From: Entomortierella parvispora E1425
Lineage: Eukaryota; Fungi; Mortierellomycota
Length of the DNA stretch: 64,000 nt
Direction of reading: 5' to 3'
Assembly: GCA_020891255.1 (NCBI GenBank)
Contig: LC659289.1
Location: forward strand, 2,034 to 66,033
The notes under the pieces were generated by a model, which worked only from the letters and a program-made list of their open reading frames with translations, searched no databases and was not told where the DNA came from. Shown here piece after piece: positions 23,200 to 62,946 of the stretch (its first letter is position 1; each line of letters opens with the position of its first letter). The translations under genes and the position numbers were made by a program.

Positions 23200-23523
23200 A
23201 TGCCTAGAAGAATACCGGATTATCCAGATTCTTTCGAAGGATGGAACTTAGTTTCATCTTTTGGTTCAATTATCTCTATTGTTGCTACAGTATTATTTAT
23301 ATATATCATTTACGATACTTTAGCACAACCAGAAGATCAATTAGCAAATGACCCATGGGCTGTTCCAGCTTTCTTTACTAGCATCCGAGGAGCTGGTAAC
23401 ACGAAATCTGCGACTACGTTAGAATGGGCAATTACTAGCCCACCGGCGTTCCATGCATTTGAAGGTCAATTACCTGTACAATCAATTAACTCCCCCCATA
23501 AAAGACTAACCTGTAAGACATAA
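23200..23523 (+). CDS. cox1: cox1 exon 5
   Basis: MPRRIPDYPD...TTLEW...PPAFHAF; spliced CDS 1629 nt. Confidence 0.96.
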   Translation: MPRRIPDYPDSFEGWNLVSSFGSIISIVATVLFIYIIYDTLAQPEDQLANDPWAVPAFFTSIRGAGNTKSATTLEWAITSPPAFHAFEGQLPVQSINSPHKRLTCKT

Positions 23524-24924
23524 AAGTTACAAGTTTTAATAAAAAATATTATTTCATCATTGTATTTATTTTATTTTTATTATTAATAATTATTATGTAT
23601 CTTATTTAGTTATTAGTTTAAGTCTGAGATTTTAGTAAATTAAATTTTTACTTTTTCTTTGAATGTCCCCTTTATGGCTTTTATTAAAATTATTTATTTT
23701 AGTAGGCTCGATACCATTAACTTATCATTATTTATTAATAATCTTCATTGAATTTTATTTTTTAGAATTTTTATTTATTATTTTTTATAATAACAATGTA
23801 TAATTATTAAGAGGATTATTTTCAAATAATATTATTATCTGAAAATCCATTAATCTTAATAGTGGTCGTTATTTTATAAAATAACTTAGTATATAAATAT
23901 CATATATTTCTTTTTTTTAAAAAAGTTTTTTAGTAAGATCTATTAATGTTTATTTTAATGAAGTATATTTAAATTATAAATTTTATATTAAAATAAAAAA
24001 CTGCAATATATTATGGATTTATAGAGAGCCTATAATAAATATGTTAGCTTATGATTTAACTAGATGATTAAATTCATATTATTTTATATATGAATTGAAA
24101 TAATTAATTTTTATGATAATAGATTTATTATCTTATATTCGTTTTATGTTTTTATAATTAATACTAAAATATATTAATATTTAAAATTTATCTAAAAAAG
24201 AAACATGTATATTAATTCTTTCACGTGAAGAATTTTATTTAGACTTGATTTAATTAAATATTACATATTTAAATTAGCAGAATTTTCTTTAGGTATAAAC
24301 ATAAAGAAAATTTTATTATTAAAATTAGTGAAAATCTTTAGATTTTTGGAAAAATCATGCTTTAATGCAATTATTAAATTAAGCGAGAAAATAACCAGAT
24401 GTTTGAAAAAAGAAAAATTATATTCAATATATAAAGCTTTTTTACTAAAATTCGAGAATTAAGTAGAATAGTATAAGGAACTACTATTTTGTATTCTCAT
24501 TGGACGGTATATTTGTAAATAAATTCTTTTTAGTTAGAGAAGCAGGATTATATTTTAATTGTTTATATATTATTATTATTGTGAGGTATGTAAATAATAA
24601 AAAATTATTTCAAGGAAAATGGTTTTATCTTTATTACTTATATTTTTTTGTAAGGTAGTATAATCGTATGGCTATATCTAATAATATATTTTTTAATAAA
24701 ATTTTCTTTTAAAATAAAGGCTCCATTATATTTAGATACTTTATTAATTATACTTTATTAAAAATTTAAAATAATACGGAATTTTATTATATAATCAATT
24801 TTATATTTCAGCACGTTCTCAGATTTAATTATTTATTCAATAATTTAGCAATACTTCAAGGTCGAATTTTAACGCTCTTTTTTAAATATATTAAAGTGGC
24901 TATGATTGATTATATGTATAAACG

Positions 24925-25008
24925 GGGTAAGTGGCCGAGTGGTTTATGGCGTTTGGCTTGAAACTAAATATGTGAAAACATGCGGAGGTTCGAATCCTTC
25001 CTTGCCCG
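24925..25008 (+). tRNA. trnS: tRNA-Ser(UGA)
   Basis: TTTGG-CTTGAAA-CTAAA, long variable arm. Confidence 0.94.
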
Positions 25009-25099
25009 AAAAGATTTGAGACTAAGATAAAATAATACGGATATTAATATTATTTTTAATTAATATTATTAATAATTAATATTTTTTAAGGAATTAATA

Positions 25100-25182
25100 T
25101 AGAAAGTGACTGAGTGATTAAAGTATTTGACTTGAAATTAAATATATGAATTACATATGAAAATTAAGATCCTTTCTTGCTT
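25100..25182 (+). pseudogene. Eroded tandem copy of trnS(UGA)
   Basis: GTGACTGAGTGATT...TTTGACTTGAAATTAAATAT aligns to trnS with G>A and C>T changes; T-arm destroyed. Confidence 0.75.
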
Positions 25183-25329
25183 AAAAATAAACATTAAAAT
25201 TAATAAACTTTTTGAATCAATAGTAAATTATAAAATATTACTTATCAATGAGTTAATACCTTCTTATTATTCTAAAGTGGCTACGTCCGATATTCATATA
25301 TAATAATAAGTACAATATTTTTTTTTAAC

Positions 25330-26106
25330 ATGACAACTTTTATTAATACTGTTTTCATTAACAATCCATTAGAGCAATTCGAAATTAAAGAATTTTTCTA
25401 CATGGGTGGTCCATTATTAGGTGCAAAATTTTCATTAACTAATATTGGTTTATATCTTATTATAGTTACTATACTTGTATTAGGGATGAGTTATTTATCT
25501 TTAAATAACAATAAAGTAGTACCTTCTAGATGGAGTATCGTTCAAGAATCTTTATTCGGTAGTATCTTAAACATGATTAAATCTACTATTGGTGGAAAAG
25601 GAGAGGCTTATTTACCTTTCTTATATACAATTTTTTTATATGTATTATTATCTAATTTAATTGGTTTAGTGCCATATTCATTCACACCTTCAAGTCATTT
25701 TGTTTTTGGTATTGGATTTAGTGTTGCTATTTTAATTGGTGTTACTATCTTAGGTTTCCAAACTCATGCATTAAAATTCTTTGGATTATTTGTACCAGCT
25801 GGAACTCCTTTAGGATTAGTACCAGTTTTAGTAATGATTGAAACTATCTCATATTTAGCTAGAGCTTTAAGTTTAGGGTTACGATTAACTGCTAATATGA
25901 TTGGTGGACATGTTCTGTTAAAAATCTTTTCTACTTTCACGTGGAAAGCGGTTATTGGAGGACCGATCTTACTATTAATTAGTATTATACCATTTGCATT
26001 TATAATTGCATTTACTGGGTTAGAAATTGCTATCGCTTTTATCCAGGCGTATGTGTTTACTATGTTAACAGCATCTTACTTAAATGACGCGATTAACTTA
26101 CATTAA
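25330..26106 (+). CDS. atp6: ATP synthase subunit a
   Basis: NPLEQFEI, LGLRLTANMIGGHVLL, EIAIAFIQAYVF. Confidence 0.99.
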   Translation: MTTFINTVFINNPLEQFEIKEFFYMGGPLLGAKFSLTNIGLYLIIVTILVLGMSYLSLNNNKVVPSRWSIVQESLFGSILNMIKSTIGGKGEAYLPFLYTIFLYVLLSNLIGLVPYSFTPSSHFVFGIGFSVAILIGVTILGFQTHALKFFGLFVPAGTPLGLVPVLVMIETISYLARALSLGLRLTANMIGGHVLLKIFSTFTWKAVIGGPILLLISIIPFAFIIAFTGLEIAIAFIQAYVFTMLTASYLNDAINLH

Positions 26107-26184
26107 TTATAACGTGTTAATTTTATTTTTATAATTAACACCCCCCCCCTTTATTAAAAAGTTTAGAAAATTTATATGTACAAA

Positions 26185-27297: not shown

Positions 27298-27496
27298 AGA
27301 TGTATTACTTAAAATTTTCTCAACATTTACTTGGAAAGCTGTAATAGATGGACCAGTTTTATTATTAATTTCTGTAATATCTTTCGCTTTCATTATAGCC
27401 TTTAGAGGTTTATAAATTGCTATTGTTTTCATCTAAGCATACGTTTTCACTATGTTAACAGCATCTTACTTAAATGATGCGATTAATTTACATTAA
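27298..27496 (+). pseudogene. atp6 shadow, displaced 3' end with nonsense mutations
   Basis: VLLKIFSTFTWKAVIDGPVLLLIS...AYVFTMLTASYLNDAINLH*; C motif AACACCTCTCCC follows. Confidence 0.92.
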
Positions 27497-27650
27497 TTTT
27501 TTATTTGTATAAACTTAACAAAAAGTTAACACCTCTCCCTTTTTTAATTTCTATTTGTATAAATTAAGTATCCTTTTTTACTAATAATGTTCTATACTTA
27601 CAATAATATTTTTTAATAAATTTAATAAAATAAAAATTAAAATAATAATA

Positions 27651-28488: not shown

Positions 28489-28653
28489 TTATTGTTTTAG
28501 AGGGGGGGGGAGTTTTGTTAACGCCATTCTTATAGAAAATAATAATGGGTAAGTTGGTAATATATATGTTGATAAAATATATAAAATTACTACAAATAAT
28601 AAAAATGAGTATGATATCATATTTATGAAGTAAAATGGTAATAATTGTGGCAT
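28489..28653 (-). CDS. atp8: ATP synthase subunit 8 (not in ORF track)
   Basis: MPQLLPFYFINMISYSFLLFVVILYILSTYILPTYPLLFSIRMALTKL (48 aa), then C-run read as Pro codons; the stop position depends on the homopolymer length. Confidence 0.93.
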   Translation of the reverse strand: MPQLLPFYFINMISYSFLLFVVILYILSTYILPTYPLLFSIRMALTKLPPPLKQ

Positions 28654-32958: not shown

Positions 32959-33810
32959 ATGGAAAATAATACAATATTTTCACCAATTGTATTTTATGAT
33001 AATACAAATACCGATAAATCACGAATTTTATCAGAAAATAAAGGGAAAACTGGTATATATCAGTGGACTCATAAAGAATCTGGTAAAATTTATATTGGTA
33101 GTGCAGTAGATCTATCTAGTTGTTTAAGTAAATATTATTCTCCTTTAAACTTAAAACGGTTAGATAACTATATTTCTAGAGCTCTTCTTGTTTACACTCA
33201 TTCTGCTTTTTCTTTATCTATTATTGAGTACATAGATATAACAGGTTTAACTAAGGAAAACGCTCGTAAATTAATACTTTCTAGAGAGCAATTCTACATA
33301 GATTCTTTAGTACCTCAATATAATATATTAAAAGTAGCTGGTTCTTCATTAGGTTATAACCACTCGGACGAATCAATAGCTTTAATGAAAAAAATTCAAA
33401 AAAATATTGATAGATCGGGTGAAAAAAATCCAATGTTTGGTCGTACTGGTGAAAAAAATCCTTTTTATAATAGAACTCATACAGCAGAGACTATCGCTAA
33501 GATGAAGGAAATTAATAAAGGTAAAATAAAATCAGAAGAAATAAGAACAAAAATGAGTGTCTCTCAAAAGAAGATCAATAATTTGGGTGAAAATAACCCA
33601 ATGTTTGGTAAAACAGGTGATTTAAGTCCTGTAAGCAAAAAAGTTTATGTATATTCAAGTTCTTCTCCAAGTATTCTTTGTTATGAATTCTTATCTATAC
33701 TAGAAACTGCTAAGTATTTTAATTGTAGTAATACAACTATTTCTAGATATATAAAGAATGGAGAAGTATTTCAAAAAGAGTATATTTTATCTTTTTATCC
33801 TTTAATTTAA
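32959..33810 (+). CDS. Intact free-standing GIY-YIG endonuclease with NUMOD3-like repeats
   Basis: GIYQWTHKESGKIYIGSA, SREQFYID, repeated GEKNPMFG. Confidence 0.93.
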   Translation: MENNTIFSPIVFYDNTNTDKSRILSENKGKTGIYQWTHKESGKIYIGSAVDLSSCLSKYYSPLNLKRLDNYISRALLVYTHSAFSLSIIEYIDITGLTKENARKLILSREQFYIDSLVPQYNILKVAGSSLGYNHSDESIALMKKIQKNIDRSGEKNPMFGRTGEKNPFYNRTHTAETIAKMKEINKGKIKSEEIRTKMSVSQKKINNLGENNPMFGKTGDLSPVSKKVYVYSSSSPSILCYEFLSILETAKYFNCSNTTISRYIKNGEVFQKEYILSFYPLI

Positions 33811-33863
33811 TAATTTTAAGGGATAATATGAATTTTAAATTCTTAATGTACATAATTAATTCA

Positions 33864-33894
33864 CGTCATTTTACAACTAAGACAAACTCCCCTT
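33864..33894 (+). repeat. Copy of the nad5 3' terminus and C motif, located upstream of nad5
   Basis: CGTCATTTTACAACTAAGACAAACTCCCC matches 36123-36151. Confidence 0.9.
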
Positions 33895-34175
33895 AAGTTT
33901 AATTTTTAATAGAAATTAAAAGTTAAATTATTACGTGGATCAATCCGGATTAAATAATTCTTTTCGAATTATTTAATAATTAATTATAATTGTTTATATG
34001 AATTAATTAATAATTAAATAATAAATATTAATTATATAATAATTATTGTTACAATTATTAACATAAATTTTTATTCTAATTGGATAATTAAATTCTTTAT
34101 TAAGAATAATTTTTAAATTTTGATAATTAGAAATATCCCGTTTTATAAATAAAGAGGAAATTTATACACTTTATA

Positions 34176-36164
34176 ATGTATTTAGCAATTATTTTAATTC
34201 CACTATTAGGTTCTATATTTAGTGGAATGTTTGGTAGAAAATTAGGAGCACAAGGTAGCCAATTTATTACAACCTTTGGGTTGATTTTTACATGCCTATT
34301 ATCTTTCACAGCCTTTTATGAGGTAGGATTGAATCATTCGCCAGTATCTGTAGATTTGTTCTCATGGATTGACTCTGAATATTTTTTAGTTTCATGGGGA
34401 TTTACATTTGATAGTTTAACAGTTTCTATGTTAATTCCTATTGTATTTATATCTTCATTAGTACATATGTATTCTATTTCATATATGGGAGGCGATCCGC
34501 ATACGCAGAGATTTTTCAGTTATTTATCAGCCTTTACTTTTTGTATGTTATTATTAGTATGTGGAGATAATTTATTAGTGTTATTTGTAGGTTGGGAAGG
34601 TGTAGGTGTATGCTCTTATTTACTAATTAGTTTTTGGTTTACAAGAATAGCTGCAACTAAATCAGCAATACAAGCTATAGTTACTAATAAAGTAGGTGAT
34701 TGGGGAATGTCTATTGCTCTTTTTGCAATTATTTTTGTATTTGGAAATTTAGATTATTCTAGTATATTTTCTTTAGCTCCATATATTAATACTGATATTT
34801 TAACATTCATTAGTTTATGTATATTAATAGGTGTTATGGCTAAATCAGCTCAATTAGGTTTACATGCTTGGTTACCTACGGCTATGGAGGGTCCTACACC
34901 AGTTTCAGCTTTAATCCATAGTGCTACAATGGTAACAGCTGGAATTTTCTTAATGATAAGAACTTCACCATTATTAGAATATAGTAGTACAGCATTAATA
35001 GTAATTACATGTCTTGGATCATTATCAGCGTTTGTTTTTGCCTCAATAGGATTAGTACAAAATGATTTAAAACGAATAATTGCTTATTCAACAGCTAGTC
35101 AATTAGGTTATTTAGGAGCTGTCTGTGGATTAAGTCAATATAATATAGCTTTTTATCATATTATTAATCACGCTTTTTTTAAAGCATTATTATTCTTAGC
35201 AGCAGGTTCAGTAATTCATGCAATGGCAGATGAACAAGATGTGAGACGAATGGGGGGTTTAGCTAAATTATTACCATTTACTTTTGTAGTAATGTTTATT
35301 GCTGCTTTAAGTAACATTGCTTTCCCATTCTTATCAGGATTTTATTCTAAAGAAATAATTATTTTATCGGGTTATTCACAATATTCATTCCACGGGTCTT
35401 TTGCCTATTGGATGACTACCTTTGCAGCTTTATTTACTTCTATTTATACAACTAGATTGTTATATTTAACCTTTTTTTCTATACCTAATGGACCTAGAAA
35501 TAATTATGAAAATACACATGAAGCTCCTTTCTTTATGGCAATACCATTAGGAATTTTAGCTATTCTATCTGTAGTTTTTGGTTATTTAAGTAAAGATCTA
35601 TTTATAGGTATAGGTACAGATTTTTTTGCAAACGCGTTATTTATCCATCCTAATCATATAATAATTGTAGACGCTGAATTCGCATTACCTCTATTTATTA
35701 AATTATTACCATCTATCTTAACTATCTGTGGATTTATTGGAACTTTATTATTTTACGAGTTTGTGCCTAATATCTTAGTTGAAATTAAATTATCTAAATT
35801 TGGTAGAATGTTATATACATTCTTAAATCAAAAATATTTCTTTGATTTAGTTTATTCTCGTTTAATAGGATTAGTATTAAACATTGGGTACATGACACAT
35901 AAAGTAATTGATAGAGGAACTTTAGAATTAATAGGTCCAACAGGACTTACTAATTTATTTAATAATACTAGTAAAAATATCGCTTCGTTAGATTCTGGAT
36001 ATATCCCTAATTTAGCACTTTATATCATTTTATCTGTTATTACATTAACAGGTGCGATCTTGTATTTAGACGACGCGCGTTTATTATTGATCTTTATTTC
36101 TACTTTATTTCTTCTTAACTCTCGTCATTTTACAACTAAGACAAACTCCCCCCTTTTTTATTAA
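34176..36164 (+). CDS. nad5: NADH dehydrogenase subunit 5
   Basis: GWEGVG, AMEGPTPVSALIHSATMV, HIINHAFFKALLFL. Confidence 0.99.
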   Translation: MYLAIILIPLLGSIFSGMFGRKLGAQGSQFITTFGLIFTCLLSFTAFYEVGLNHSPVSVDLFSWIDSEYFLVSWGFTFDSLTVSMLIPIVFISSLVHMYSISYMGGDPHTQRFFSYLSAFTFCMLLLVCGDNLLVLFVGWEGVGVCSYLLISFWFTRIAATKSAIQAIVTNKVGDWGMSIALFAIIFVFGNLDYSSIFSLAPYINTDILTFISLCILIGVMAKSAQLGLHAWLPTAMEGPTPVSALIHSATMVTAGIFLMIRTSPLLEYSSTALIVITCLGSLSAFVFASIGLVQNDLKRIIAYSTASQLGYLGAVCGLSQYNIAFYHIINHAFFKALLFLAAGSVIHAMADEQDVRRMGGLAKLLPFTFVVMFIAALSNIAFPFLSGFYSKEIIILSGYSQYSFHGSFAYWMTTFAALFTSIYTTRLLYLTFFSIPNGPRNNYENTHEAPFFMAIPLGILAILSVVFGYLSKDLFIGIGTDFFANALFIHPNHIIIVDAEFALPLFIKLLPSILTICGFIGTLLFYEFVPNILVEIKLSKFGRMLYTFLNQKYFFDLVYSRLIGLVLNIGYMTHKVIDRGTLELIGPTGLTNLFNNTSKNIASLDSGYIPNLALYIILSVITLTGAILYLDDARLLLIFISTLFLLNSRHFTTKTNSPLFY

Positions 36165-36476
36165 AATTTTTAAAAATAGTTAATTATTAACAATAATACG
36201 AGAATTTATTAAACAGTCTAATATATAATATTATCTCGTAATTAACTTTTAAGGTTTGAGTCTTCTAATCTTTAATTTTACCATAAAGTGTGTTAAATAA
36301 ATAAGTATAATATTAAAATAATTTAGTTATATATGTTAATAACTAATAGATGATTAATAATATTTTAGGAATAGAAATTAATATTAAAATATATGATATG
36401 ATTACAATCATTTTTTTCAATCATCGAGTTATCGACGGGTTACTTACACTTAGCGGAGATTCAAAAAATAATTAAA

Positions 36477-37109
36477 ATGGAATTAAAAGGTAAACCTGGA
36501 ATTTACGGGTTTCTTTGTAAAACTAATAATAAATTATATATAAGTTCTTCAAGTAAATTATCAGTTCGTTTTAATAAACATATAAATGGATTACAATCCA
36601 ATGTTTTACTTCAAAATGCAATTAATAAATATAATTTGTAGGATTTTATTTTTGTAATTTTTGAATATTGTGAGACAGATAAATTATTATCTCGAGAACA
36701 ATATTATTTAGATACCCTTGAACCTGAATTTAACATCCTTAAAATAGCTGAAAATTGTTTAGGATTAATACGTTCAAAGGAGAATAGAGATAAAATTAGT
36801 AAATTCTTTAAAGGAGTACCATTATCTGAAGAACATAAATTAAATATAAGTAAAGCAAGACTTGGTGAATTACATCCAATGTATGGTAAAAATCACTCAA
36901 ATAGTACAAAAATCAAGATGAGTATTGCTAAAGGTACGCCTATTTTTGTATATTCTAGTGATAGTAATACGCTAATTTATAATTTTACTTCATTAAAAAA
37001 AGCTAGTGAATTTTTTAATTGCTTAGATCATACGATTAAAAGATATTTAAATGGTAAATTGTTTAAAAAACAATGGATTTTAACTTCAAGTATTAGAGAT
37101 TCTTCTTAA
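36477..37109 (+). pseudogene. GIY-YIG endonuclease with a single in-frame TAG (36639-36641)
   Basis: GIYGFLCKTNNKLYISS, LSREQYYLD. Confidence 0.88.
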
Positions 37110-37146
37110 CTCTCGTCATTTCACAATTAAGACAAACTCCCCCCTT
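37100..37146 (+). pseudogene. Shadow of nad5 3' terminus
   Basis: Matches 36109-36155 with 2 mismatches, including the C motif. Confidence 0.92.
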
Positions 37147-37284
37147 CTTATGGAAACATTTTTATAGTTAATATTGAAAATTATTAATAAATTAATATTG
37201 GACTTATTCAATAAAAAATAAGTTAATACTGATAATATAAAATAGATTAATACTTAAAAGTCAGTTCAGATTATATATTTTAAT

Positions 37285-37355
37285 AGGACAATAGCTTAAC
37301 GTAAAGCTCTCTGCTCATAACGGATATGATGGAAGTTCGACTCTTCCTTGTCCTA
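37285..37355 (+). tRNA. trnM: tRNA-Met(CAU), probably elongator
   Basis: TCTG-CTCATAA-CGGA; acceptor AGGACAA/TTGTCCT. Confidence 0.88.
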
Positions 37356-37880
37356 TTCTTCCACTATTCTATATAAGAATGGTGATACATTATATAATAT
37401 GCAGAATTTGTATATTATTAATTTATTTTTAAAATTTTTTAGACTTACTTTCTCAAATATCTGGGGTTGATCTAAGCTATAAGAATTTTGATTTTAAATT
37501 TATAAACAAACAAGTTTATTTGTATTACTTAAACGTATTAATTAAATTATAATTCATTATAATTTAATTATATTATAATTCGTTTAAGTAATTATATGGT
37601 TAAATGTTAAACCCATAATAGTTATATAAATTATATAAAATGGTTATGAATATATTTGAATTAAAAACCAATTTTATTTTTGTTATTTTGCACAATTTTA
37701 TACGAAGTTTTTATTTATAATAAAAAAAATTAATTAAAAACTTAAAAAAACAAATAAAAATAATATATTTCTGTAAAGAAATATACCTTTTTCATTCTTT
37801 TACGTTTCAGTAAATATAGTTAATTATTAGAATTTAATAATAAACTTTAGATTAAGGAATATAAAAAGAATTTAAATATT

Positions 37881-39188
37881 TTGAAACTTTTAAAAACCCA
37901 TCCTTTTTTAAGTTTAGTTAATAGTTATGTAATAGATTCTCCTTCTCCTTCAAATATTTCATATTTATGGAATTATGGAAGTCTTCTTGGTGTTGTTTTA
38001 GTAATACAAATTGCTACAGGTGTTACATTAGCAATGCATTATACGCCTAATGTAGATTTAGCTTTTATTTCTGTAGAACATATTATGCGTGATGTTAATT
38101 ATGGTTGGATGATAAGATATCTTCATGCTAATGGAGCTGCATTCTTCTTTATTTTTATTTATATCCATATGGCTAAAGGGTTATATTATGGATCATATAA
38201 AGCACCAAGAGTAATGTTATGGTCAATAGGTGTAATTATCTTTTTATTATTAATAATAACAGGATTCTTAGGTTATGTTTTACCTTACGGTCAAATGAGT
38301 TTTTGGGGAGCTACTGTAATTACTAATTTAATGTCAGCAATACCGTGGATTGGTAATGATTTTGTAGAATTTTTATGGGGTGGTTTTTCTGTAGGTAATC
38401 CTACTTTAAACCGATTCTTCAGTTTACATTATTTATTACCATTTATTTTAGCTGCATTAGTAATAATGCATCTTATTGCACTTCACGAACATGGATCAAA
38501 TAATCCATTAGGAATTACTTCAAATGTAGATAGAATCAGATTCCATCCTTACTATAGCTTCAAAGATTTAGTAGGTCTTTTTGTTTTCTTCTTCATATTT
38601 GCATATTTTGTATTTTTTAATCCTAATTTCTTTGGAGAAAGTGATAATTATATACCAGCTAATCCTTTAGTAACTCCAATTTCTATAGTACCAGAATTCT
38701 ATTTACTTCCGTTCTATGCGATATTACGATCTATACCTCATAAATTACTTGGAGTAATTGGTATGGTGGCGGCTATTTTAATCTTATTAGTAACACCTTT
38801 CTTAGATACTTCTAGAATAAGATCTATGCAATTTAGACCGATTATGAAATTCTTCTTTTGGTTATTTGTAGCGAACTTCTTAATTTTAGGTTGGATAGGT
38901 GCTAATCACCCGGAATCACCTCTTGTTGAGATTGGTCAAGTGTCAACTATTTTCTATTTCTCTTATTTCTTGGTAATCTTACCAGTAGTAGGGATTATAG
39001 AAAATACATTATTCGATTTAGGAACTAAAACTAAATCAAACTCCCCCTTAACTGTAAAAATACATAATGTAAATAAGTCATTTAATCATAACCAAACTAA
39101 AAATTTTTATTCATTTTCACTTTTATTAAATGAAAATAATAATATTCCAAATAATGGTAATGAGAAATTAAACATTCAATTTAAATGA
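37881..39188 (+). CDS. cob: Apocytochrome b; TTG start; homology ends at ~39035, ORF runs on a further 50 aa
   Basis: [42 protein letters not shown]. Confidence 0.98.
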
Positions 39189-39259
39189 TGGCTTATTGAT
39201 AATAAACTGGCTAAAATTTATTTAAATAGTATTGAATGTATATAATATTATAGATTTAG

Positions 39260-39920
39260 AAAATAGAAATCTATCAGGTATCTATTTATGATTAAATAAT
39301 ACTAATGAAAAATATTATATTGGATCTCTAAAGACTTAGCAAAACAATTTACCAGTTATTATAGTGAAAAATCCCTTAAAAAAGTATCTTGTCTTATTCA
39401 TAAAACTATTTTGAAAAATAAACACGATAAATTTTCTCTTTATATTCTAGAGTATTATAAGATTGATGAATTATTTCAACAGAAGCAGTTTTATTTTGAT
39501 TTACTTACCTCTCTTATAATTTTCTGAGATTAGTAAGGAATTCTTTAGGATTTAAACATGCGAAAGAAACTATAGCTAAAATTAGTAAGGCTAAAACAGG
39601 TACTAAATTTGATGAGGAATATAATAAAAACGTAATGAAATTAGTAAGGGATCAAAAAATCCCTTTTATGGAAAATCTCACATAGCTGAGATTTTAATTA
39701 AATTTAGTGCATCTAAAATTGGATCAAAGAATCCTATGTTTGGTATTATTGGTGAAAAAATATTATATTTAAAAAGTATATGTCTATGAAGATAGTAATA
39801 ATTCTACGATTTTTAAAATATTTAATTCATATGTTGAAGCTGCAATATATTTTGATTGCCATGATACGACTGTTTCTAAATACATAGATAAGAAAAAATA
39901 TATAAAAGTAAGTGTATATT
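39260..39920 (+). pseudogene. Decayed GIY-YIG endonuclease
   Basis: NLSGIYL*LNNTNEKYYIGS, SKNPMFG remnants, multiple stops. Confidence 0.8.
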
Positions 39921-39937
39921 TTTATTTAGGGCCCTTT

Positions 39938-40223
39938 AGTAATCGGTATGGTTGCTGCCATCTTAATTTTACTTATTACTCCATTCTTAGATACTTCTAG
40001 AATAAGATCTATGCAATTTAGACCAATTATGAAATTCTTCTTTTGATTATTTGTAGCGAATTTCTTAATTTTAGGTTGGATAGGTGCGAACCATTCGGAA
40101 AATCCTTTAGTAGAAATTGGTCAAATATTAAGTATTTTCTATTTCTCTTATTTCTTGGTAATCTTACCAGTAGTAGGGATTATAGAAAATACATTATTCG
40201 ATTTAGGAACTAAAACTAAATAA
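39938..40223 (+). pseudogene. Displaced cob 3' end (283 nt plus TAA)
   Basis: Colinear with 38753-39035; synonymous differences, TGG>TGA, ends GTKTK*. Confidence 0.95.
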
Positions 40224-40383
40224 GAATAAATTCCCTTCTCTCTTTCTTTCTAAATTTTTCCTAACTATTTTTGTAGGTTATATATTATATAAAGATAATT
40301 AAATAAAAAAAAATTACAATTAAATTTTAATTTAAGTTATTATTAGTTAGTAAGTTCGATTCTTCTCAATTTAAAAATTATTC

Positions 40384-47416: not shown

Positions 47417-47684
47417 AAAAAAAAGCCCCTTAAAATAGTAATATTTTAATGCAAATAGGGAAAATTGCAAGGACATCCATAAATGGACAATTTGCAGCGG
47501 AGCGTATATCAGTGTTTAAAAGGTATACGAACGTTCAACGACTAATCGGTGAGCCACACTAGCAATAAACCGGACACGATAACCCTACAACCAATTATTA
47601 TAATTAACTGGTTGATGACATAGTCTAAGCCAATAGGTAACTATTGGAGGATAAAGCTAAACACTTTATCGATAATAATAACTG
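47417..47684 (+). mobile_element. ORF-less 268-nt group I intron (IC2-like) in cox2
   Basis: Exon ends U, intron ends G; GTTCAACGACTAA and GATGACATAGTCT; splicing restores HGFMPIV. Confidence 0.9.
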
Positions 47685-47755
47685 TTATGCCAATTGTGAT
47701 TGAGGCTGTTTCTTTAGAGAAATATATGGCCTGGCTTAACGAGCAATTAAGCTAA
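47685..47755 (+). CDS. cox2: cox2 exon 2
   Basis: (F)MPIVIEAVSLEKYMAWLNEQLS*; TAA overlaps the C motif. Confidence 0.92.
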
Positions 47756-47950
47756 ACTCCCCCCCCCCTTTGACTTTTTATAGTGTTATAGGATTACTCT
47801 AAAAATTTAAAGATTTCTATCTTAATATGTAATTACATAAAGACATAGAAATAAATAATATTCATATCTTTTAAAATCAAAAATTATTAAAAGAGGATAA
47901 TATTTAATTAAAAATAATTTAGAAAGTAAGTTCGATTCTTACATCTGGAT

Positions 47951-52229: not shown

Positions 52230-52870
52230 TTTTAGTATTATATTCAAAGAGTTTAGTAGCATCCCTATCAGTATTAAAAGATTTATATGGTATAGTTTCT
52301 TGAGTTTCTGAATTAAAATAATAAAAAAATAATCCTTTTAATAAAAAATATATTTTTTTTTTATTAATTTAGCAATTCTTAATTTCACACAAGTTTTATA
52401 GAAGGTGATTTATTATAACTAGAGTTTTTATCTTGTCGAACTAAGCTAATTAAAATTTTGGTTTCATCTAAGTGATTTTCACTGAATATTCTATTTCCTT
52501 CTTTTCTTTATGAGTTGCCTAATTTTAGCATGGATTTTTTGTTAGTATACAATTTGTTGGAGAACCTGTTTCAGTAAAAATATTATATTATGGTTTATGC
52601 TGGTTTAAATATCTTTGTTTATTGTTAATAGTACTTCTTTATTTTTAATAATAAATTCTTTAATAACTAATTTAAACCCTTTTCAAGAGTATATTAACTA
52701 TTTCTTTTCTCTATATAATAAAAGTATATGAGTATAATTAAGATTAGAATCAACTCTAACATAGTATCGGATTCTTTCCCATAAATTTATAGAAGAATCT
52801 ATATAAGTTTTGGAAGGATCCTCTTTATTTATAAATTGATAAATTCCGCATTTTCCTTTAAGGTCTTTTT
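52230..52870 (-). pseudogene. Decayed GIY-YIG endonuclease downstream of nad4
   Basis: KCGIYQFINKEDPSKTYIDSSINL at ~52850-52780; NUMOD remnants. Confidence 0.7.
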
Positions 52871-52990
52871 GTATTTAAGATTGAGAACTAATAATATTTT
52901 CATAAATATATAATGGGTTTATTAAATTAGATTTCTCTTTATTAAATTCTTCTTTATTTTTATTTAATAAGATAAAAGCGAGGAATAAAC

Positions 52991-54451
52991 TTAATAAGAC
53001 TTCAGAGGGGGGGTGTTTACCGAAATTAGTAAAGAACTTAATCCAAGATGAAGTGACTCTAATACTATGTTAGGGTAAATACCTAAAATGAAAGAAACAA
53101 TTATTAATGGTAATACAACGAAAAATTCTCTTCTAGTAATATCTGGCATAGTGCTCATATAACGAGAAGCTTGACCGAACGCAACTCTATTAAATAACCA
53201 GATAGAATAAGCTGCAGATAAGAACATACCAGTAGCACCAAGAATAGTAATTATTGGGTTTAGTTGGAAAGCTCCGGCGTATGACATAAACTCACCAATA
53301 AAATTACCAGAGAATGGAGTACCAATATTTGCAAGTGTAGCAAAGAAGAATATTAATGATAATATTGGCATAGATGTTGCAATACCTCGGTAGTATTTAA
53401 TAATTCTAGTATGGGATCTTACATATAAGATATCACCTACAATAATAAATAATAAAGGAGAGATAACACCATGGGCTAATCCTAATATAACAGCACCTTC
53501 AAGACCTTGAAGATTGTTAGAGAATAATCCTAAAACAACTACTCCCATATGCGAAACTGAACTATAGGCGATAATAGCTTTAACATCTATTAATCTTAAA
53601 CAAGTTAAAGAAGCATAAATAATACTTATTACAGCAAGTGTATAGATTAAAGGTGTAAAATATAAGGTAGCTTCTGGGAAATAAGGGATCATAACTCGTA
53701 ACGCTAAATAAGTAGCCAATTTAAGGATTACACCTGCCAATAATACTGATCCTCCTATCGGTGCAGCTACATGTGCAAATCCTAGCCATACATGACCAGG
53801 AATTAATGGAGTTTTAACTATAAAAGCTATTAAAAATCCTACAAATAATAATTTTTGAATATCCGTACCAAAATCTATAGTAGATAAGATTTGAAAATCT
53901 GTAGTTCCTGTTAATATGTAAATAGTAATAATTGATAATAACATAAATAATGATCCTGCTAAAGTATATAAGAATAATAAAAATCCTGCTTTTTCCTTAG
54001 TTAATAAATCTCCATAACTTAATATGATTATAAATAAAGGAATTAAGATTGATTCAAAGAATATATAGAATAATAATAAATCTAAAACTATAAAAGTTGC
54101 TATTAATAAACTTTCTAAAATTAAAAAATTTAATAAATAATGTTTAAGACTATTTTTATGATTCCAGCTTGTCAATATTATAATTGGGAATAAAAACGTA
54201 GTTAATAATATAAAAAATAACGAGATACCATCAATCCCTACATTAAAATGACAGAATGAGATTTCAGTCCATTCTTGAACAAATTGGTATTCATGAGTGT
54301 TATTGTCGAATTTAGCCCATATTACCATAGAAACGAAAAAATTTAAAATCATAGATCCTAGTGTGATCTGTTTCATTAATGATTCATTTTTGTTTACAAA
54401 AAGTAAACTTAAAGCACCTATTAAAGGTATAAAAAATAATGCTGTAAGCAT
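52991..54451 (-). CDS. nad4: NADH dehydrogenase subunit 4
   Basis: FYIFFESILIP, KAIIAYSSVSHM, AHGVISPLLF. Confidence 0.99.
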   Translation of the reverse strand: MLTALFFIPLIGALSLLFVNKNESLMKQITLGSMILNFFVSMVIWAKFDNNTHEYQFVQEWTEISFCHFNVGIDGISLFFILLTTFLFPIIILTSWNHKNSLKHYLLNFLILESLLIATFIVLDLLLFYIFFESILIPLFIIILSYGDLLTKEKAGFLLFLYTLAGSLFMLLSIITIYILTGTTDFQILSTIDFGTDIQKLLFVGFLIAFIVKTPLIPGHVWLGFAHVAAPIGGSVLLAGVILKLATYLALRVMIPYFPEATLYFTPLIYTLAVISIIYASLTCLRLIDVKAIIAYSSVSHMGVVVLGLFSNNLQGLEGAVILGLAHGVISPLLFIIVGDILYVRSHTRIIKYYRGIATSMPILSLIFFFATLANIGTPFSGNFIGEFMSYAGAFQLNPIITILGATGMFLSAAYSIWLFNRVAFGQASRYMSTMPDITRREFFVVLPLIIVSFILGIYPNIVLESLHLGLSSLLISVNTPPLKSY

Positions 54452-55940
54452 ATTGATTATTATATTTAACGCCTTTGAGGCGATGTTTAATTTCTAATTT
54501 TTATTTAATTTCTTAATAAAGCTCAAACAAGTATCAGGAAACTTTCTAAATCCCTTTAACAAATTGTAAGAGTTTATGAAATAACTCTCTTTATTCGAGG
54601 TATAATCTTTATTATAAAAAAATAATCTATGGACTATTTTAGTTGTCTTAATTATTTTTCCTTTTTTTTTAAAGAAAGAAAGTTCCAGGAAGAAATTAAA
54701 TAAAAATAATTTTTTTGCTTGATTTATTATAATTTAACGATATATAGATAAGAATATTTTTAATGAGAAATATTGGATATTATATTTATATTTGGGAGAG
54801 AGTTTATTTATTACTTACGGTAAAGTTTTTTATGGCCTCTTATGTTGTTTAATAATTGATTTGTTTCATTAAATAAAATAATAAAGAATACCTATTATAA
54901 GAATTACCAAAATTATATTAATCATTTAATAGCATAATTTTTAATATATTATGTTTGTTATTCTTTATATAGATTAATTAATATTTTACTTAATTAAAAT
55001 TACATAATTATATGTTAATAAAATTTAAGAATTTAGTGATTACTCGTTAAATTTATAAGAATAAAGAGATATTTAACAATAAATTAATAATTTCATATAA
55101 AGTATATAAATATTATAATGTTTTATTTAAGACTTAAAAATAATATTTACTGATCTTAAAATAATTAATCATTTTTAGCATATTTAAATATAATTGTTTA
55201 AGAAATTTCTATAATTATTATTTTTCTAGCTGAAATGAAGGTATTCAATAATGTTATATTATCACTATTATAAACATAAATAGTATAATCTTTAACTTTA
55301 CTTATATTTATTTAAGTTTCTAGGTAATTGTTATACCTTTTACAGATTCATTTATTTTAACATATGTCTCGATTGAGATAGTTATCTCAAATCTATGATT
55401 ATTCATACTTTTCATATTTTTATTAATGAATTTTCGTAATTCAAATGAATGTATTTGTTTTAAAAACTTTTTTTTATTTTTAGATCTTAAATTCAGGTTC
55501 TAAATTATTTAAATTATATTATTTGTATTGTAATATTAATTTTCGTGTCTCTTTCTTAGAAAAATTTGTATATCTATTATTTCAATAACGGTTAAAGAAA
55601 ATGCCTTATAATCATGATAAATAAATGCATTACAAAACATAGATTATTTAATTCATTCTAAATAGGGTTTAAAAATAAGAATTAAAATGTAAACGTAAAT
55701 GATGTAAGATCTTATATATCTTAAATTTTAATTTAATAGTATTCATAAATATATCTTTATTTTTCTCTTGAGTATCAGTTAAAATTAATAATCTTTCAAT
55801 ATTAATATTTTTATAAAGATAGTATAATTACTTTTACTAAATTTATTTTCATTCTTATTATTAACTAAATAATGATGAATTCTTTAAGAAATAGTTTTAA
55901 AAATTAAATTTGTTAGAATTATGAATAAGGGGGTGTTAAT

Positions 55941-56130: not shown

Positions 56131-57024
56131 CTATAAAATAACTCTTGACAGAATAAAATTTTCTTTAAATATTTTATCACTTATACTATAATTTAAAATA
56201 GTTTGTATACTACGATTAAAATACTCTGCTGCTTTATTAGCCGAAGGAAAAGTATTAATAAGATTAGACTTATCTAAAGTATAAACATATATTGTAGTAC
56301 CTTTAGCCATACTCATTTTAAGTTTAGATTCTGCTAGATGGTTACGACCATACATCACGTTATTTTCACCTTTAAATTTTGCATTTGTTTCCTCCGATCG
56401 TTTTTGACCTTTACGACTTTCACTAATTTTAGCTTTGGACTCTTCAGTATGAATAAGACCTAACATTCCTCGTGGAAGATCTTTAATAGAAACTTTATAC
56501 ATTGGGTTAGCTTCACCTGTCATTTTAATACTTCTAATTAATTTGGATTCTTCAGATTGTTTATGACCTAAAGGAGATCCGGCTGTTTTTAATAGGTTAT
56601 AACTAGGTTTTAAGTTATCTATGTGTTTTTGCTCGATTTCAAGAATAAGTTTACGAGCATCAAATCTTGAAAGATTTGATACATCTATATATTCAAGTAT
56701 AGAAACACTAAAATTTGAGTACCCGTGTTGTAAGATTGCATTGTAAATATAACTATTCCCTTTATTTTTATTAGAAATAATAGATACTTTGTAATAATCT
56801 CTCAATCGGTTAGATAAATTAATTGAACTTCCAATATAAAATTTTCCTGTATCCTTATGCTCCCACATGTAGACACCACTAAGATTTTTATTCTCCTTTA
56901 AAATACGCGATTTCTCAATAAAAGCATTTTCATAAAAGATAACGGGAGTAATATTTACAGATTCATTATTTATATTAGTAGAATAAGATCGAATTATTGG
57001 GTTTGTTAAATTGTTAACCCCTCC
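56131..57024 (-). CDS. Free-standing GIY-YIG endonuclease; frame open upstream of the annotated ATG (56868), true start unknown
   Basis: TPVIFYENA...SGVYMWEHKDTGKFYIGSS; NUMOD3-like repeats; no ATG upstream of the GVY motif. Confidence 0.85.
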   Translation of the reverse strand, partial: GGVNNLTNPIIRSYSTNINNESVNITPVIFYENAFIEKSRILKENKNLSGVYMWEHKDTGKFYIGSSINLSNRLRDYYKVSIISNKNKGNSYIYNAILQHGYSNFSVSILEYIDVSNLSRFDARKLILEIEQKHIDNLKPSYNLLKTAGSPLGHKQSEESKLIRSIKMTGEANPMYKVSIKDLPRGMLGLIHTEESKAKISESRKGQKRSEETNAKFKGENNVMYGRNHLAESKLKMSMAKGTTIYVYTLDKSNLINTFPSANKAAEYFNRSIQTILNYSISDKIFKENFILSRVIL

Positions 57025-57026
57025 TT

Positions 57027-57872
57027 TTAAAATAGCTGTATTTCGTACAAGGGGGTGTTCATTATATTTGAAGAAAATGAACGGTTTAAATTAGAAACCT
57101 GATTATTGTTTGACATAGACGAAGATAACCAAACTTTGATACTAATAGCTCCATTTTTTCCTTTAAAAGAAAATTTGTTAGCATCAATTAAGCTATTATT
57201 ACTGTTAAGAGATAAAGTACCTATAGATTTTCGTACTACTCGTGTTCTAGAAGCTGCTTTTCGATTAGATAATCGTCCTGATATAACTATTTTAATACCT
57301 GATAAATACATCGGATCTAATCTAGTAGAAGAATACTTAATTAAATCTTTAATATTCTCTAGGTTATTTCTAATACTACTAGGTTTAACTAATTTTGCTT
57401 TTTTAAATAAATTTCGCGTAATCATATTAAATTTTCCTTTTTTTATATTAAAGGCAATATATTGCGCTAAAATGCAAGAATTTAAATAAGGATAATGAAT
57501 TCTTACAGGTCTTAATTCAACAGGTTTACCATATAAATTAGATAATTTTAAAATTAAACTAGAAAATTTAATAGCTTGTAAACTATTTTGTAAAGATGAT
57601 ATATTTCTTCTTGACTGTTTAGAAGATTTATTTATTTTTGATATTGGTAAATTTAAAAAATAATAAAAATTAATTACAATTTTATTAGAATCTTTATTAA
57701 ATTTAGGTTTCGAAATTAAAGCAAATTGAAAATAATGTTTAATAATATTTAAAGCTATTTTATCTGCTCCATAATAAGTCTGAAGTTCATTTTCAGAGCA
57801 GAAATGATATGATGTGTTTGTCCAATTTTGTTTTGTTTTTAATCGTAAACTTATAGGATGTTTACTACCCAT
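57027..57872 (-). CDS. rps3: Ribosomal protein S3 (fungal mt)
   Basis: HPISLRL N-terminus, VELRPVRIHYPYLNS, GIKIVISGRL, GAISIKVWL. Confidence 0.93.
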   Translation of the reverse strand: MGSKHPISLRLKTKQNWTNTSYHFCSENELQTYYGADKIALNIIKHYFQFALISKPKFNKDSNKIVINFYYFLNLPISKINKSSKQSRRNISSLQNSLQAIKFSSLILKLSNLYGKPVELRPVRIHYPYLNSCILAQYIAFNIKKGKFNMITRNLFKKAKLVKPSSIRNNLENIKDLIKYSSTRLDPMYLSGIKIVISGRLSNRKAASRTRVVRKSIGTLSLNSNNSLIDANKFSFKGKNGAISIKVWLSSSMSNNNQVSNLNRSFSSNIMNTPLYEIQLF

Positions 57873-59598: not shown

Positions 59599-59669
59599 GA
59601 CTCTAGGGTCAGATGGTACGACGCTATTCCTTCACAATAGAATTACCGGTTCGATTCCGGTTAGAGTTA
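59599..59669 (+). tRNA. trnE: tRNA-Glu(UUC), atypical G8 and C33
   Basis: CTATT-CCTTCAC-AATAG; T-arm ACCGG-TTCGATT-CCGGT. Confidence 0.87.
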
Positions 59670-60271: not shown

Positions 60272-60343
60272 GGGAATGTTACTTAACGGGTAAAGTGGTA
60301 AGCTTTTAACTTATTTATCAGAGTTCGAGTCTCTGCGTTCTCA
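60272..60343 (+). tRNA. trnK: tRNA-Lys(UUU)
   Basis: TAAG-CTTTTAA-CTTA. Confidence 0.93.
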
Positions 60344-60540
60344 TTCAACTATAAACTATTAACTATAAATAATATAGAACCTGGATAAGTCTATAGGTAT
60401 ATTCTGTTTCTTTATTTGTTTATAATCATAAATTATACAAAAAATTATGATCACTGAGAACAACGGTCATTAATTTCAATTATAATTATCAGTAATTACA
60501 TAATCTATTTATCAGGATCATTTATATTAAGATTAATTTA

Positions 60541-60625
60541 TATCAAGGTTCAGGTATCTTATCAAGGTTCAAGTCTCTATATATCAAGGTTCAAGTCTCT
60601 ATATATCAAGGTTTAAGTCTCTATA
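60541..60625 (+). repeat. Tandem repeat, ~4 x 22 nt TATCAAGGTTCAAGTCTCTATA
   Basis: Units start at 60541 (variant), 60560, 60582 and 60604. Confidence 0.92.
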
Positions 60626-60844
60626 AATCTTAAAGCTTTTTATATAATAAACAATATTCAAACTTTTCTAGAGGGAAAATAAGTATATTAATTCTTTCTT
60701 TTTCTTAAATTTCATTTCTAAAGAGAGGGGGGGCTTTAAAATGATCCTTTTAAACTTATCAAAATATATTATAAATAGAGGATTTTCTTTAAAGTTTAAA
60801 ATCTATTATTAATTTTTTCTTTTTTTCACAATTTCGGAGAAATA

Positions 60845-61770
60845 AATGATGTTTTAACATCGGTTGTTCCCATTTTAATTAATTCTAATGGGGAAACGGA
60901 TAAATCCAAAATTTTATCTGAAAATAAAGGTAAAACAAGAATTTATTTATGACTCATAAAGAATCTAATAAAAATATATTGGTAGTGTAGTAGATCTATC
61001 TAGACGATTAAAAGATTATCATTTCTCTTATTATTTAAAACGAACTAATAACATTATTAATAGAGTTATTATATCTCACACTCATTCTGCATTTAATCTT
61101 ACTATTTTTGAATATTTTAATATATCTAATCTATCTTAAGAAAATTCACGTAAATTGATTCTTGAACGAGAACAATATTATATTGACATATTTTTACTTG
61201 AGTACAATATATTAAAATTAACTGGAAGTCCTTTAGGATATGTTCATTCTGCAGAAACTCTTGTAAAAATGAGTGAAATTCAGAAAAGTATAGATAAAAC
61301 AAGTGAGAATAATCCAATGTTTAGTAGAATTGGAGAATTAAATCCAATGTTTGGAAAATCGCATACTTCTGAAACTAAAGAAGTATTAAGCAAAGCAAAT
61401 AAAAAAAATTAATTTAAGAAATAACTAAACAGAAAATGAATAAAGCCTTGTCCGATGAAAATAATCCCATGTTTGGAAGAAACCATTCTGAAAAATCTAT
61501 AGCTTTAATGAATAAAGCTATGATAGGGGATAATTATTCTATGTTTGGAAAATCTTATTCAACAGATACTTTAAATAAATTAAGTTAGGCAAATGGTACA
61601 ACTATTTATGTTTATTTTTTAGATAAAACTACTCTTGTAAATACTTTTCCTTTAGCTTTTAAAGCAAGAAAAATTTTAATGTAATTCATTCAACTATTAT
61701 GAAGTATGTTAGAAAAGACATAATATTTAAAAAACAGTGGATTTTATATACTGAAAATTTGCCTAAAAAT
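60845..61770 (+). pseudogene. Decayed GIY-YIG endonuclease
   Basis: RIYL*THKESNKKY, LILEREQYYID, ENNPMF repeats. Confidence 0.85.
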
Positions 61771-61982
61771 TAACTTAAGAAAAAGGAATAGAAGGAACTA
61801 TTCAATATAGTAACCTCGTATTTTTACACCCAACTTTTTATCAAGTTATTTTGTAGAATTTAATTTAGGGCACAATTGTTTATTTATAAATAATAGTATT
61901 GATATGTAATAATAAGTAAAAAATTTAAGTTATAACCTTATTTGTACAAATCTTTCTTAAATAAATAATTTAATTAAATAAT

Positions 61983-62057
61983 ATAAATGTTACTTAAATT
62001 GGTAAAGTAAATAAGTTTTTTTAATTTATTTTTCAGAGTTCGAATCTCTGCATTTTT
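61983..62057 (+). pseudogene. Eroded copy of trnK
   Basis: AATGTTACTTAA..GGTAAAGT..TAAG..TCAGAGTTCGAATCTCTGC. Confidence 0.82.
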
Positions 62058-62337
62058 ATTAGATACACTAAATGTATCTTACTATATTTATTTTATAAAT
62101 CTTACGATAAAAAGATTTATCTCGATTATTAATGTTAATTACCTTTTTTAAGTAATTATGTCGAGAGAAAAATCTATAAGTCCTTATATAAGAATAATTC
62201 CCCAGACGTTGGGACTTTTTTATCTATTTTGTGAAGCCGATATACTGGGAACAAAAGATAAATTAAAATATAAGGCTAGGGTTTATACTTTAGGATTATT
62301 AATTTAAAATTAATTTATCTATTTTTACACAATTAAA

Positions 62338-62946
62338 ATGAATTCTTTATTATTAGATTTATTAACGTTTTCTTCTGTATTATCTGCTATATTGGTAATT
62401 ACAGCTCGGTCACCTGTTATAGCGGTTATCTTCTTAATTGCAGTTTTTATAAACCTTGCAGGTTATTTAATTTTATTAGGAATTAACTTTATAGGATTAG
62501 CCTATATTATGGTTTACATCGGAGCTATTGCTATATTATTTTTATTTGTTATAATGATGCTTAATATTCGATTAGTTGAAATCTCTGAAATAGGAAATCA
62601 ATATAATAAAAATATTCCTTTAGCCATAATTATTGCATCTGTCTTAAGTTATTTAATATCCTTAAATACTATTTCATCAAAATTTGATCAAATTTATTTA
62701 ATTACAGCTTTATTCGATAAAGTGAATTTTTGGTTGGCAGGTATTACTTCTTCAAGTAATTCTCTTTATATAGGATTTAATTCTACTTATAACAATATCT
62801 TCGTTAACTATGATGAAGTTCAAGTTTTAGGTGCAATGTTATACTCTTCTCATGGATTGTATCTTGTACTTGTATCTTTTATATTGTTATTGGCAATGAT
62901 TGGGCCAATAATAATAACATTAGATAAAAAAAACTCCCCCCAATAA
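62338..62946 (+). CDS. nad6: NADH dehydrogenase subunit 6
   Basis: SPVIAVIFLI, YIMVYIGAIAILFLFVIMMLN, LLLAMIGPI. Confidence 0.97.
   Translation: MNSLLLDLLTFSSVLSAILVITARSPVIAVIFLIAVFINLAGYLILLGINFIGLAYIMVYIGAIAILFLFVIMMLNIRLVEISEIGNQYNKNIPLAIIIASVLSYLISLNTISSKFDQIYLITALFDKVNFWLAGITSSSNSLYIGFNSTYNNIFVNYDEVQVLGAMLYSSHGLYLVLVSFILLLAMIGPIIITLDKKNSPQ

Follow-up and report, generated by a model that had tools for sequence, protein, structure and literature searches.

Fungal mitochondrial genomes are known to contain C-rich motifs that define RNA 3′ ends, and mobile endonuclease genes that lodge at the ends of host genes. Both bear on the locus described here, a 64,000-nucleotide stretch of the mitochondrial genome of Entomortierella parvispora E1425 (Mortierellomycota; GenBank assembly GCA_020891255.1, contig LC659289.1, positions 2,034 to 66,033 of the forward strand), hereafter the window, in which copies of the motif AACWCCCCC lie inside the reading frames of several core genes and would be read as Asn-Ser/Thr-Pro before any stop codon. 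The closest described counterpart is the C-core or C-rich motif of fission yeasts, zygomycetes and basidiomycetes (Schafer 2005; Hoffmann 2008; Shang 2018, PMC6097661), which is also known from basal fungi (PMC6097661; PMC3185421). In Schizosaccharomyces pombe, mitochondrial RNAs end one or a few nucleotides past the C-core and the mRNAs are not polyadenylated (PMC6097661), which bears out the precedent invoked by the original prediction, made from the letters of this DNA alone. The window motif resembles these systems in having at least five C residues on the sense strand after an A-rich context, and in lying, highly over-represented, at the 3′ ends of rns and of almost all protein genes. It differs in its placement: described C-core motifs lie a few nucleotides past the open reading frame (ORF), whereas in 7 of 15 core genes of the window the motif is inside the ORF, ahead of any stop, an arrangement that is stable across the family. 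A further mark of the C-core system is its dependence on an exonuclease-helicase complex of the Dss1/Suv3 type (Rpm1/Par1-Rpm2/Pah1), whose genes are nuclear. Seif et al. reportedly stated in 2005, in their abstract, that mRNAs, rns and rnpB of Mortierella verticillata end at such motifs.

Mobile ORFs (mORFs) associated with duplication or replacement of a gene's C-terminus have been described for Allomyces atp6, for Glomus atp6, atp9, cox2 and nad3, for Rhizopus atp9 and for M. verticillata cox2 (PMC3630166). As in these cases, the genomes considered here carry GIY-YIG or LAGLIDADG endonuclease ORFs directly behind host genes, often in phase, with displaced native 3′ ends downstream and a presence that varies between relatives. 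Unlike in the known mORFs, the junction is an apparent RNA 3′-end signal read as Asn-Ser/Thr-Pro, and the genes involved are nad4, nad5, cob, rps3 and an intron ORF; we found no paper linking mORF fusion to a C-rich motif or to loss of the host stop codon. A third point of comparison is mRNA without a stop codon, which Raczynska and colleagues are said to have described in 2006 for nad6 and ccmC of Arabidopsis mitochondria. What the window shares with these plant transcripts, and with rescue by ICT1/ArfB (PMC8786322), is a predicted mature 3′ end upstream of the genomic stop and hence codon-independent termination; what sets it apart is that about half of the protein genes would be affected, through a defined motif, although this is deduced from DNA sequence. 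Every eukaryotic phylum has mitochondrial homologues of ArfB/ICT1, factors that act on truncated mRNAs (PMC8786322). In animal mitochondria, incomplete stops completed by polyadenylation likewise belong to ORFs that run up to an RNA processing site, but the U of the window motif opens the second motif codon and is not placed at a codon boundary where it would give UAA without trimming into the motif. We know of no report of motif-caused stop-less mitochondrial mRNAs in fungi. The arrangement in the window appears to be a variation on two known phenomena, the C-rich 3′-end motif and the mobile endonuclease ORF at a gene end.

Results

A C-rich motif lies within the reading frames of core genes

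The window has a G+C content of 23.8% and contains rnl, rns, 26 tRNA genes and the usual protein genes (identified by Pfam), and its closest database sequences are Mortierellaceae-like contigs from soil. Since the core genes are all open under translation table 11 and the tRNA-Trp anticodon is CCA, TGA is read as a stop and the genetic code is standard. AACWCCCCC is present in 17 exact copies over the two strands, where shuffled sequences lead one to expect 0.17; every copy is on the sense strand of the gene or ORF upstream of it, and variants follow nad1, atp9 and rns. These properties match those of a C-core motif, and AACWCCCCC(C) is probably the mitochondrial RNA 3′-end maturation signal of this Mortierellaceae genome.

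A check of all three frames at each copy showed that six core genes and the ORF of cox1 intron 1 read AAC as a codon in their own frame without meeting a stop first. The original prediction had placed all seven of these sites correctly, along with their frames and the lengths of the tails that follow. In the last exon of cox1 (AAC TCC CCC C; 23488..23497, plus strand) the frame continues for eight residues (HKRLTCKT) to a stop at 23521-23523. Three further plus-strand genes read the motif as N-S-P: nad5 (36144..36153), with a three-residue tail (LFY; stop 36162-36164), cob (39039..39047), with a tail of 46 residues (TGA at 39186-39188), and nad6 (62932..62941), with a single Gln (stop 62944-62946). 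On the minus strand are nad4 (AAC ACC CCC CC, 53007..53017), which continues with the five residues PLKSY (stop 52991-52993), and rps3 (AAC ACC CCC, 57051..57059), which continues with the seven residues LYEIQLF. The remaining site (16879..16888, plus strand), read as N-S-P-L, is codon 419 of the 692-residue ORF formed by cox1 exon 1 and intron 1, at a junction of LAGLIDADG_2 and LAGLIDADG_1 endonuclease domains. T follows AAC at five of the seven sites (four of the six core genes), and A follows it in nad4 and rps3. The gene atp8, rightly singled out beforehand as the exception in register, also reads through its C-run, in another phase (ACA AAA CTC CCC CCC CCT CTA AAA CAA TAA; 28502..28514, minus strand). 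In cox1, cob, nad4, nad6 and atp8, no C-run other than the embedded copy is found on the sense strand ahead of the next gene; a second motif is present farther along for nad5 (37135) and rps3 (55937).

The other motif copies are arranged in more ordinary ways. The motif follows the stop in atp6 (26137..26149, plus strand, 31 nt past the stop), cox3 (51421), nad1 (variant; C-run at 44788) and atp9 (variant; C-run at 4468), and the stop overlaps it in nad3 (TCT TAA CTCCCCCC; 6013..6023, minus strand) and in the last exon of cox2 (AGC TAA ACTCCCCCC, the site being TAA ACTCCCCCCCCCC; 47753..47768, plus strand). A variant marks the 3′ end of rns (C-run 10101-10105, minus strand), and copies at 17774 and 59541 lie behind endonuclease ORFs. 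Another (11804-11813, minus strand) is upstream of rns and behind an apparent decayed LAGLIDADG ORF (11900-12700, minus strand); Rfam found no rnpB near this copy or elsewhere in the window. The cox2 ORF stops at ...GVNHG and its C-terminal part (FMPI...NEQLS) lies about 300 nt downstream (47418-47755, plus strand), so an intron or insertion is present; the same break is seen in relatives L103, L112 and L120. We also considered whether C-runs are avoided within coding regions, and dropped the idea when the count of C4 (none observed, about 1.7 expected by our own estimate) was not significant.

The motif is conserved as nucleotides and the tails behind it drift

Constraint on the embedded motif is apparent from codon usage. 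Among 3,871 codons of 13 core genes, CCC accounts for 1 of 140 Pro codons, ACC for 2.7% of Thr, TCC for 1.8% of Ser and AAC for 19% of Asn, a usage under which AAC-WCC-CCC is expected with P of about 3e-5. Relatives, numbered L or P in what follows, came from metagenome, Logan and NCBI contigs and databases. For nad4, a metagenome scan yielded 25 distinct 3′ ends (Nad4 79-97% identical), none with a stop ahead of the motif. AAC[AT] plus a C-run is kept in 23 of these 25, with A and T interchanged between relatives at the same site, while the third base of the codon just before the motif varies (A14/T7/G3/C1). In these comparisons the embedded motif is evidently kept as nucleotides and not as amino acids.

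The lack of a stop ahead of the motif, proposed originally for the window, also turned out to be evolutionarily stable in nad5 and nad6. Five of six database relatives of nad5 (P0241-P0246; 77-84% identical) have no stop before the motif; Asn-Ser/Thr-Pro is in frame in four of the six and Gln-Thr-Pro in a fifth, every tail is different, and the relatives with an in-frame motif include L081, P0241, P0242 and P0245. For nad6, three of four distinct contexts have the motif in frame without a prior stop. The register itself, whose behavior across relatives had been named as a check, is thus kept in most nad4, nad5 and nad6 sequences, with other phases found in nad3 of L097 and cob of L087.

Behind the C-run, by contrast with the motif, little is retained. 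The nad4 run varies from 5 to 9 C among relatives, and as a result one and the same stretch behind it (...TATTATTAAGTTTATTCC...) falls into different frames, with stops 0 to 976 nt from the run and tails such as P, PP, RR, KRFY, LKYY and PLKSY, each followed by a stop, or one of 25 residues. Over all genes and relatives, tails range from 0 to more than 300 codons. Tails free of an endonuclease average about 8 codons (hand count), where neutral drift would give about 11 (stop frequency of 0.091 per random codon). The earlier impression that the tails are non-conserved is thereby extended to their frames, lengths and stops, and the best explanation is that the sequence behind the C-run is free of protein-level selection and that the working proteins would end at about ...Asn-Ser/Thr-Pro.

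Stops next to the motif have been gained and lost. The closest cob relative, L081, reads AAA TAG TTT AAC ACC CCC where the window has AAA TCA AAC TCC CCC, and TCA or TCG stands in place of TAG elsewhere. Other Cob relatives end in GTKTK or continue in frame to a later stop (..SINTPQNDDKI), and one lineage (L087-L091) reads through in another phase (GCA ACA CCC CCC). In nad3 of L097, TAA CTCCCCCC is replaced by GAA CTCCCCCC and the frame reads on for 13 codons. The Nad4 of P0128, which ends in ..NTP, was considered as a possible transcript end and rejected: a stop directly follows the run, on contigs that continue. Relatives also have G+C-rich palindromic hairpin elements, for example CCCCCCGCAGGCTTGCGGGGGG (L087 3500-4250; L081 4630-4700); the one in L081 sits directly behind the nad5 motif and alters the nad5 tail, and those in L087 lie within NUMOD-like ORFs.

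Endonucleases are fused to host genes across the motif

In a number of relatives the host frame passes through Asn-Ser/Thr-Pro into an endonuclease, with domains recognized by Pfam. A single ORF joins nad4 to GIY-YIG, NUMOD3 and NUMOD1 in L099/L168, L112, L173 (the same as P0127; NCBI assembly GCA_040960375.1), P0124 and P0134, and joins nad4 to LAGLIDADG in L100, P0126 and a second copy in L113. Comparable ORFs link cob to GIY-YIG (L085, identical to P0001; Cob...SINTPLINK...) and nad5 to LAGLIDADG (P0243). In five fusions (L112, P0127, L096, L100 and L085) the stretch from the motif to the catalytic domain lacks a Met codon. Displaced native gene ends are present in L112 (12253-12474) and L100 (4234-4392). 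Homing endonucleases have thus evidently been joined in frame to host genes across the motif in Mortierellaceae. Both endonuclease families behind nad4 have a common leader of about 15 residues (Q/P-E-I-L-L-S-L/F-F-P...), indicating that the in-frame state was reached at least twice, and the presence or absence of the endonuclease elements differs among relatives.

The C-run differs in length between cases in and out of frame. With 7 C in the window and 8 C in L095, the endonuclease leader behind nad4 is in the -1 frame (window 52900-53017, minus strand; L095 11400-12400), whereas L096 (2755-3755), 99% identical to L095, has 6 C and is in frame; the two also differ at an A-run (8 versus 9). 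The three out-of-frame host-endonuclease cases are all -1, none +1.

In the window itself, an endonuclease gene or what is left of one comes immediately behind every in-frame site but that of nad6 (six of seven). The remnants behind nad5 and cob are in the host frame; for the sequences behind rps3 and nad4 the frame shifts by -1 at the C-run. A decayed GIY-YIG gene behind cob (39048..39877, plus strand) begins at the motif itself, in the frame of cob, and the 46-residue Cob tail is its leader; by tblastn, residues 2-166 of the tail of the cob-GIY-YIG fusion in L085 align to 39039-39506 in the cob frame. A displaced cob 3′ end follows (40075..40221, plus strand), 90% identical and with its TAA stop kept; its C-run has decayed to TTCCCTT (40222-40240, plus strand), which fits a constraint that would act on the resident copy only. 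Behind nad5 there is a decayed GIY-YIG/NUMOD1 gene in the nad5 frame (36414..37094, plus strand), then a displaced second copy of the nad5 3′ end with its motif (37100..37146, plus strand). A third copy of this end, with a motif of 4 C only (33856-33892, plus strand), is upstream of nad5, behind an intact GIY-YIG ORF (32959-33810).

The frame behind rps3 (GIY-YIG, NUMOD3 and NUMOD1; 56134..57057, minus strand) is intact and open from the motif onward in the -1 frame, and its catalytic domain begins upstream of the first ATG. The rps3 run has 5 C, and 6 C would place rps3 in frame with this ORF (AAC ACC CCC CTT GTA ...), so that a fusion would be obtainable by a -1 slip of tRNA-Pro, by polymerase slippage or by an assembly error. 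Behind the endonuclease gene is the motif of the displaced native rps3 end (55929..55937, minus strand). The closest rps3 relative, L092, ends in ..NNVSI and a stop, with the motif 26 nt later, in the same context as the copy at 55937; the in-frame 3′ end of rps3 was therefore carried in by the element and is not native.

The nad4 remnant consists of a leader (SEVLLSLFLAF..) and a decayed GIY-YIG sequence (52650..53006, minus strand, -1 frame), and GIY-YIG/NUMOD remnants lie behind cox1 (24014..24631, plus strand). A displaced atp6 end is located at 27383-27498, and no displaced native end was found for nad4, cox1 or nad6 within the window. A 33-nt stretch adjoining tRNA-Asn on the opposite strand (63846-63878, minus strand) shares 88% identity with the end of cox1 immediately ahead of its motif.

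The shared register is suggestive at best

The original prediction considered the in-frame sites as read-through in one fixed register and gave the chance of seven in eight as 51/6561. The arithmetic is right; the equal-frame model behind it is not, as the sample was selected and omitted nad3 and cox2. These two genes escape being counted as read-through because the motif's own AA completes TAA in the other two phases. Once every gene abutting the motif is included, nine in all, the phases divide 6:2:1 (P = 0.042 for a named phase, 0.13 for any phase). The flank closes 5 of the 17 motif copies in each of the other two phases; corrected for this, 6 of 7 has P = 0.023, and a tally of independent origins that takes in relatives (7 of 10) puts P at 0.02 to 0.07. 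As a control, in cox3 and nad1, where the motif comes past the stop, the phase among 7 distinct relatives for each gene has a spread of 3/2/2. Under a fair null, then, the single register is not statistically robust (P of about 0.02 to 0.13). The caveat attached to the earlier calculation, that the cases may lack independence, was well placed, several of them sharing ancestry through mobile elements. The register would be better explained mostly as the footprint of in-frame endonuclease fusion and shared descent than as a termination requirement.

RNA fragments at the nad5 motif

Twenty soil metatranscriptomes contain 5-13% of the words of window positions 34000-39990. Their contigs, aligned to this region, come from relatives and match nad5 and cob in the conserved interior alone, with depth zero from 38800 on. 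One contig (X1) matches 36115-36146 and then passes directly into Illumina adapter, so that a fragment ends at the nad5 motif, just past AAC, and one X21 contig ends at 36145. The two ends lend weak support to an RNA end at the nad5 motif. Other contigs ending at a motif or carrying adapter were sought among all retrieved loci, and none was informative.

Discussion

The explanation that we consider best overall, and which we hold to be somewhat more probable than its competitors combined, is that a 3′-end signal occupies the last codons of these genes, that the mRNAs processed at it are stop-less, and that the common register is historical, established through endonuclease fusions. In mechanistic terms, most transcripts would be trimmed at the C-run or a few bases past it, leaving mRNAs of cox1, nad5, cob, nad4, rps3, nad6 and atp8 without a stop codon. 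Proteins ending in ...Asn-Ser/Thr-Pro would then be freed by a stop-independent release factor of the ArfB/ICT1 type, and only unprocessed precursors would give rise to host-endonuclease fusion proteins. Processing at the motif would in this way separate expression of the host from that of the parasite, much as splicing does for intron ORFs, and the shared register would mainly record the junction at which homing-endonuclease ORFs are, or once were, fused in frame. For this specific sequence of events we put the chances at about even, perhaps a shade above.

Several observations weigh against this account. The RNA runs that a search returned were soil metatranscriptomes of relatives, none from this organism and none reaching the 3′ ends of cob, nad4 or the other genes. 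The adapter-tagged end is a single contig and falls before the C-run, unlike the pattern in S. pombe, and the X21 end may reflect assembly breaking off at the edge of a repeat, the window containing three copies of the nad5 end. C-run lengths, and hence tails, may hold assembly errors. The register bias is weak, as detailed above. Neither is endonuclease fusion the sole source of the register, given that nad6 has no remnant and that endonuclease-free relatives such as L101 have the nad4 motif in frame (AAC ACC CCC TAA); the association in the window between read-through and a downstream endonuclease (6 of 7 versus 2 of 6; Fisher P = 0.086) is only suggestive. The intact endonuclease ORFs in frame with host genes imply translation of some transcripts across the motif; processing there cannot then be complete. 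Finally, short tails could be merely tolerated, in which case stop-less mRNAs would be unnecessary.

This last point leads to the strongest competing explanation, namely that the embedded motifs are unused or weakly used, that mRNAs reach the genomic stop or extend beyond it to the next tRNA or motif, and that harmless, variable tails are translated and terminated in the ordinary way. All tails in the window do finish at an ordinary stop 1 to 46 codons on, several relatives have in nad4 a shared TAT TAA stop four to five codons past the run or a stop directly behind it (NTP or NTPP), and the second motifs of nad5 (37135) and rps3 (55937) could set the transcript end; the in-frame endonuclease ORFs, too, show that ribosomes can pass the motif. 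It is harder to see why the motif should then be held at the nucleotide level inside ORFs despite extreme codon bias, or why reading frames past the run vary and tails have the lengths that neutral drift would give. Five of the genes have no other C-run downstream, stoichiometric Nad4-endonuclease fusions of 700 to 800 residues would be odd complex I subunits, and one adapter-tagged RNA contig ends at the nad5 motif. We regard translated tails as unlikely overall, though as the alternative most deserving of attention.

Intron-encoded ORFs fused to upstream exons are matured by proteolysis. By analogy, Asn-Ser/Thr-Pro could be a protein-level signal, such as a cleavage or release site that splits a host-endonuclease polyprotein, and the tripeptide does stand exactly at every host-endonuclease junction. 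A signal of this kind would allow synonymous codons, and none is seen in spite of the strong A/T bias at third positions; moreover, the same nucleotide motif lies untranslated behind stops, rns and free-standing ORFs. We consider this quite improbable.

Less probable again is that the AAC|UCC|CCC register is itself needed for termination, for example by trimming to the U and adenylation to create UAA, a route put forward in the original prediction. U follows AAC at most of the in-frame sites, and the single RNA contig end lies right after AAC. In that contig, though, AAC passes straight into adapter and neither U nor an A tail intervenes; nad4 and rps3, two of the six core genes, have A instead of U, and among relatives the site may hold either A or T. 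Mitochondrial mRNAs of S. pombe end past the C-core without polyadenylation (PMC6097661). Read-through in other phases (atp8, nad3 of L097, cob of L087) and a bias that is not significant under a fair null make it very doubtful that such a requirement exists. As for chance or assembly artefact, near-identical contigs do differ in C-run length (8 C in L095, 6 C in L096), so that tails can be artefactual, but the register upstream of the run is independent of its length and the same arrangement recurs in dozens of independent metagenome, Logan and NCBI contigs, which leaves this scarcely credible.

Returning to processing at the motif as the favored explanation, a practical consequence is that automatic annotation gives Nad4, Nad5 and Cob spurious tails or turns them into fusions of 700-800 residues. 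A broader proposition, which we offer tentatively and hold with less conviction than the explanation above, is that routine expression from stop-less mRNAs extends to about half of the protein genes in Mortierellaceae mitochondria, that endonucleases exploit the 3′-end signal with processing taking a role like that of splicing, and that fusion is switched on and off by C-run length or by a -1 slip of tRNA-Pro at the run. If the mature mRNAs do end at the motif, core respiratory subunits would be subject to routine, high-flux, stop-independent termination, and these fungi would offer a natural system for the study of mitochondrial ArfB/ICT1-type release. A mechanism would also be added to what has been a descriptive picture of mORFs and gene-end replacement in fungal mitochondrial DNAs. 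It would explain how mobile endonuclease ORFs can be placed in phase behind essential genes without damage, RNA 3′ processing serving to uncouple host from parasite.

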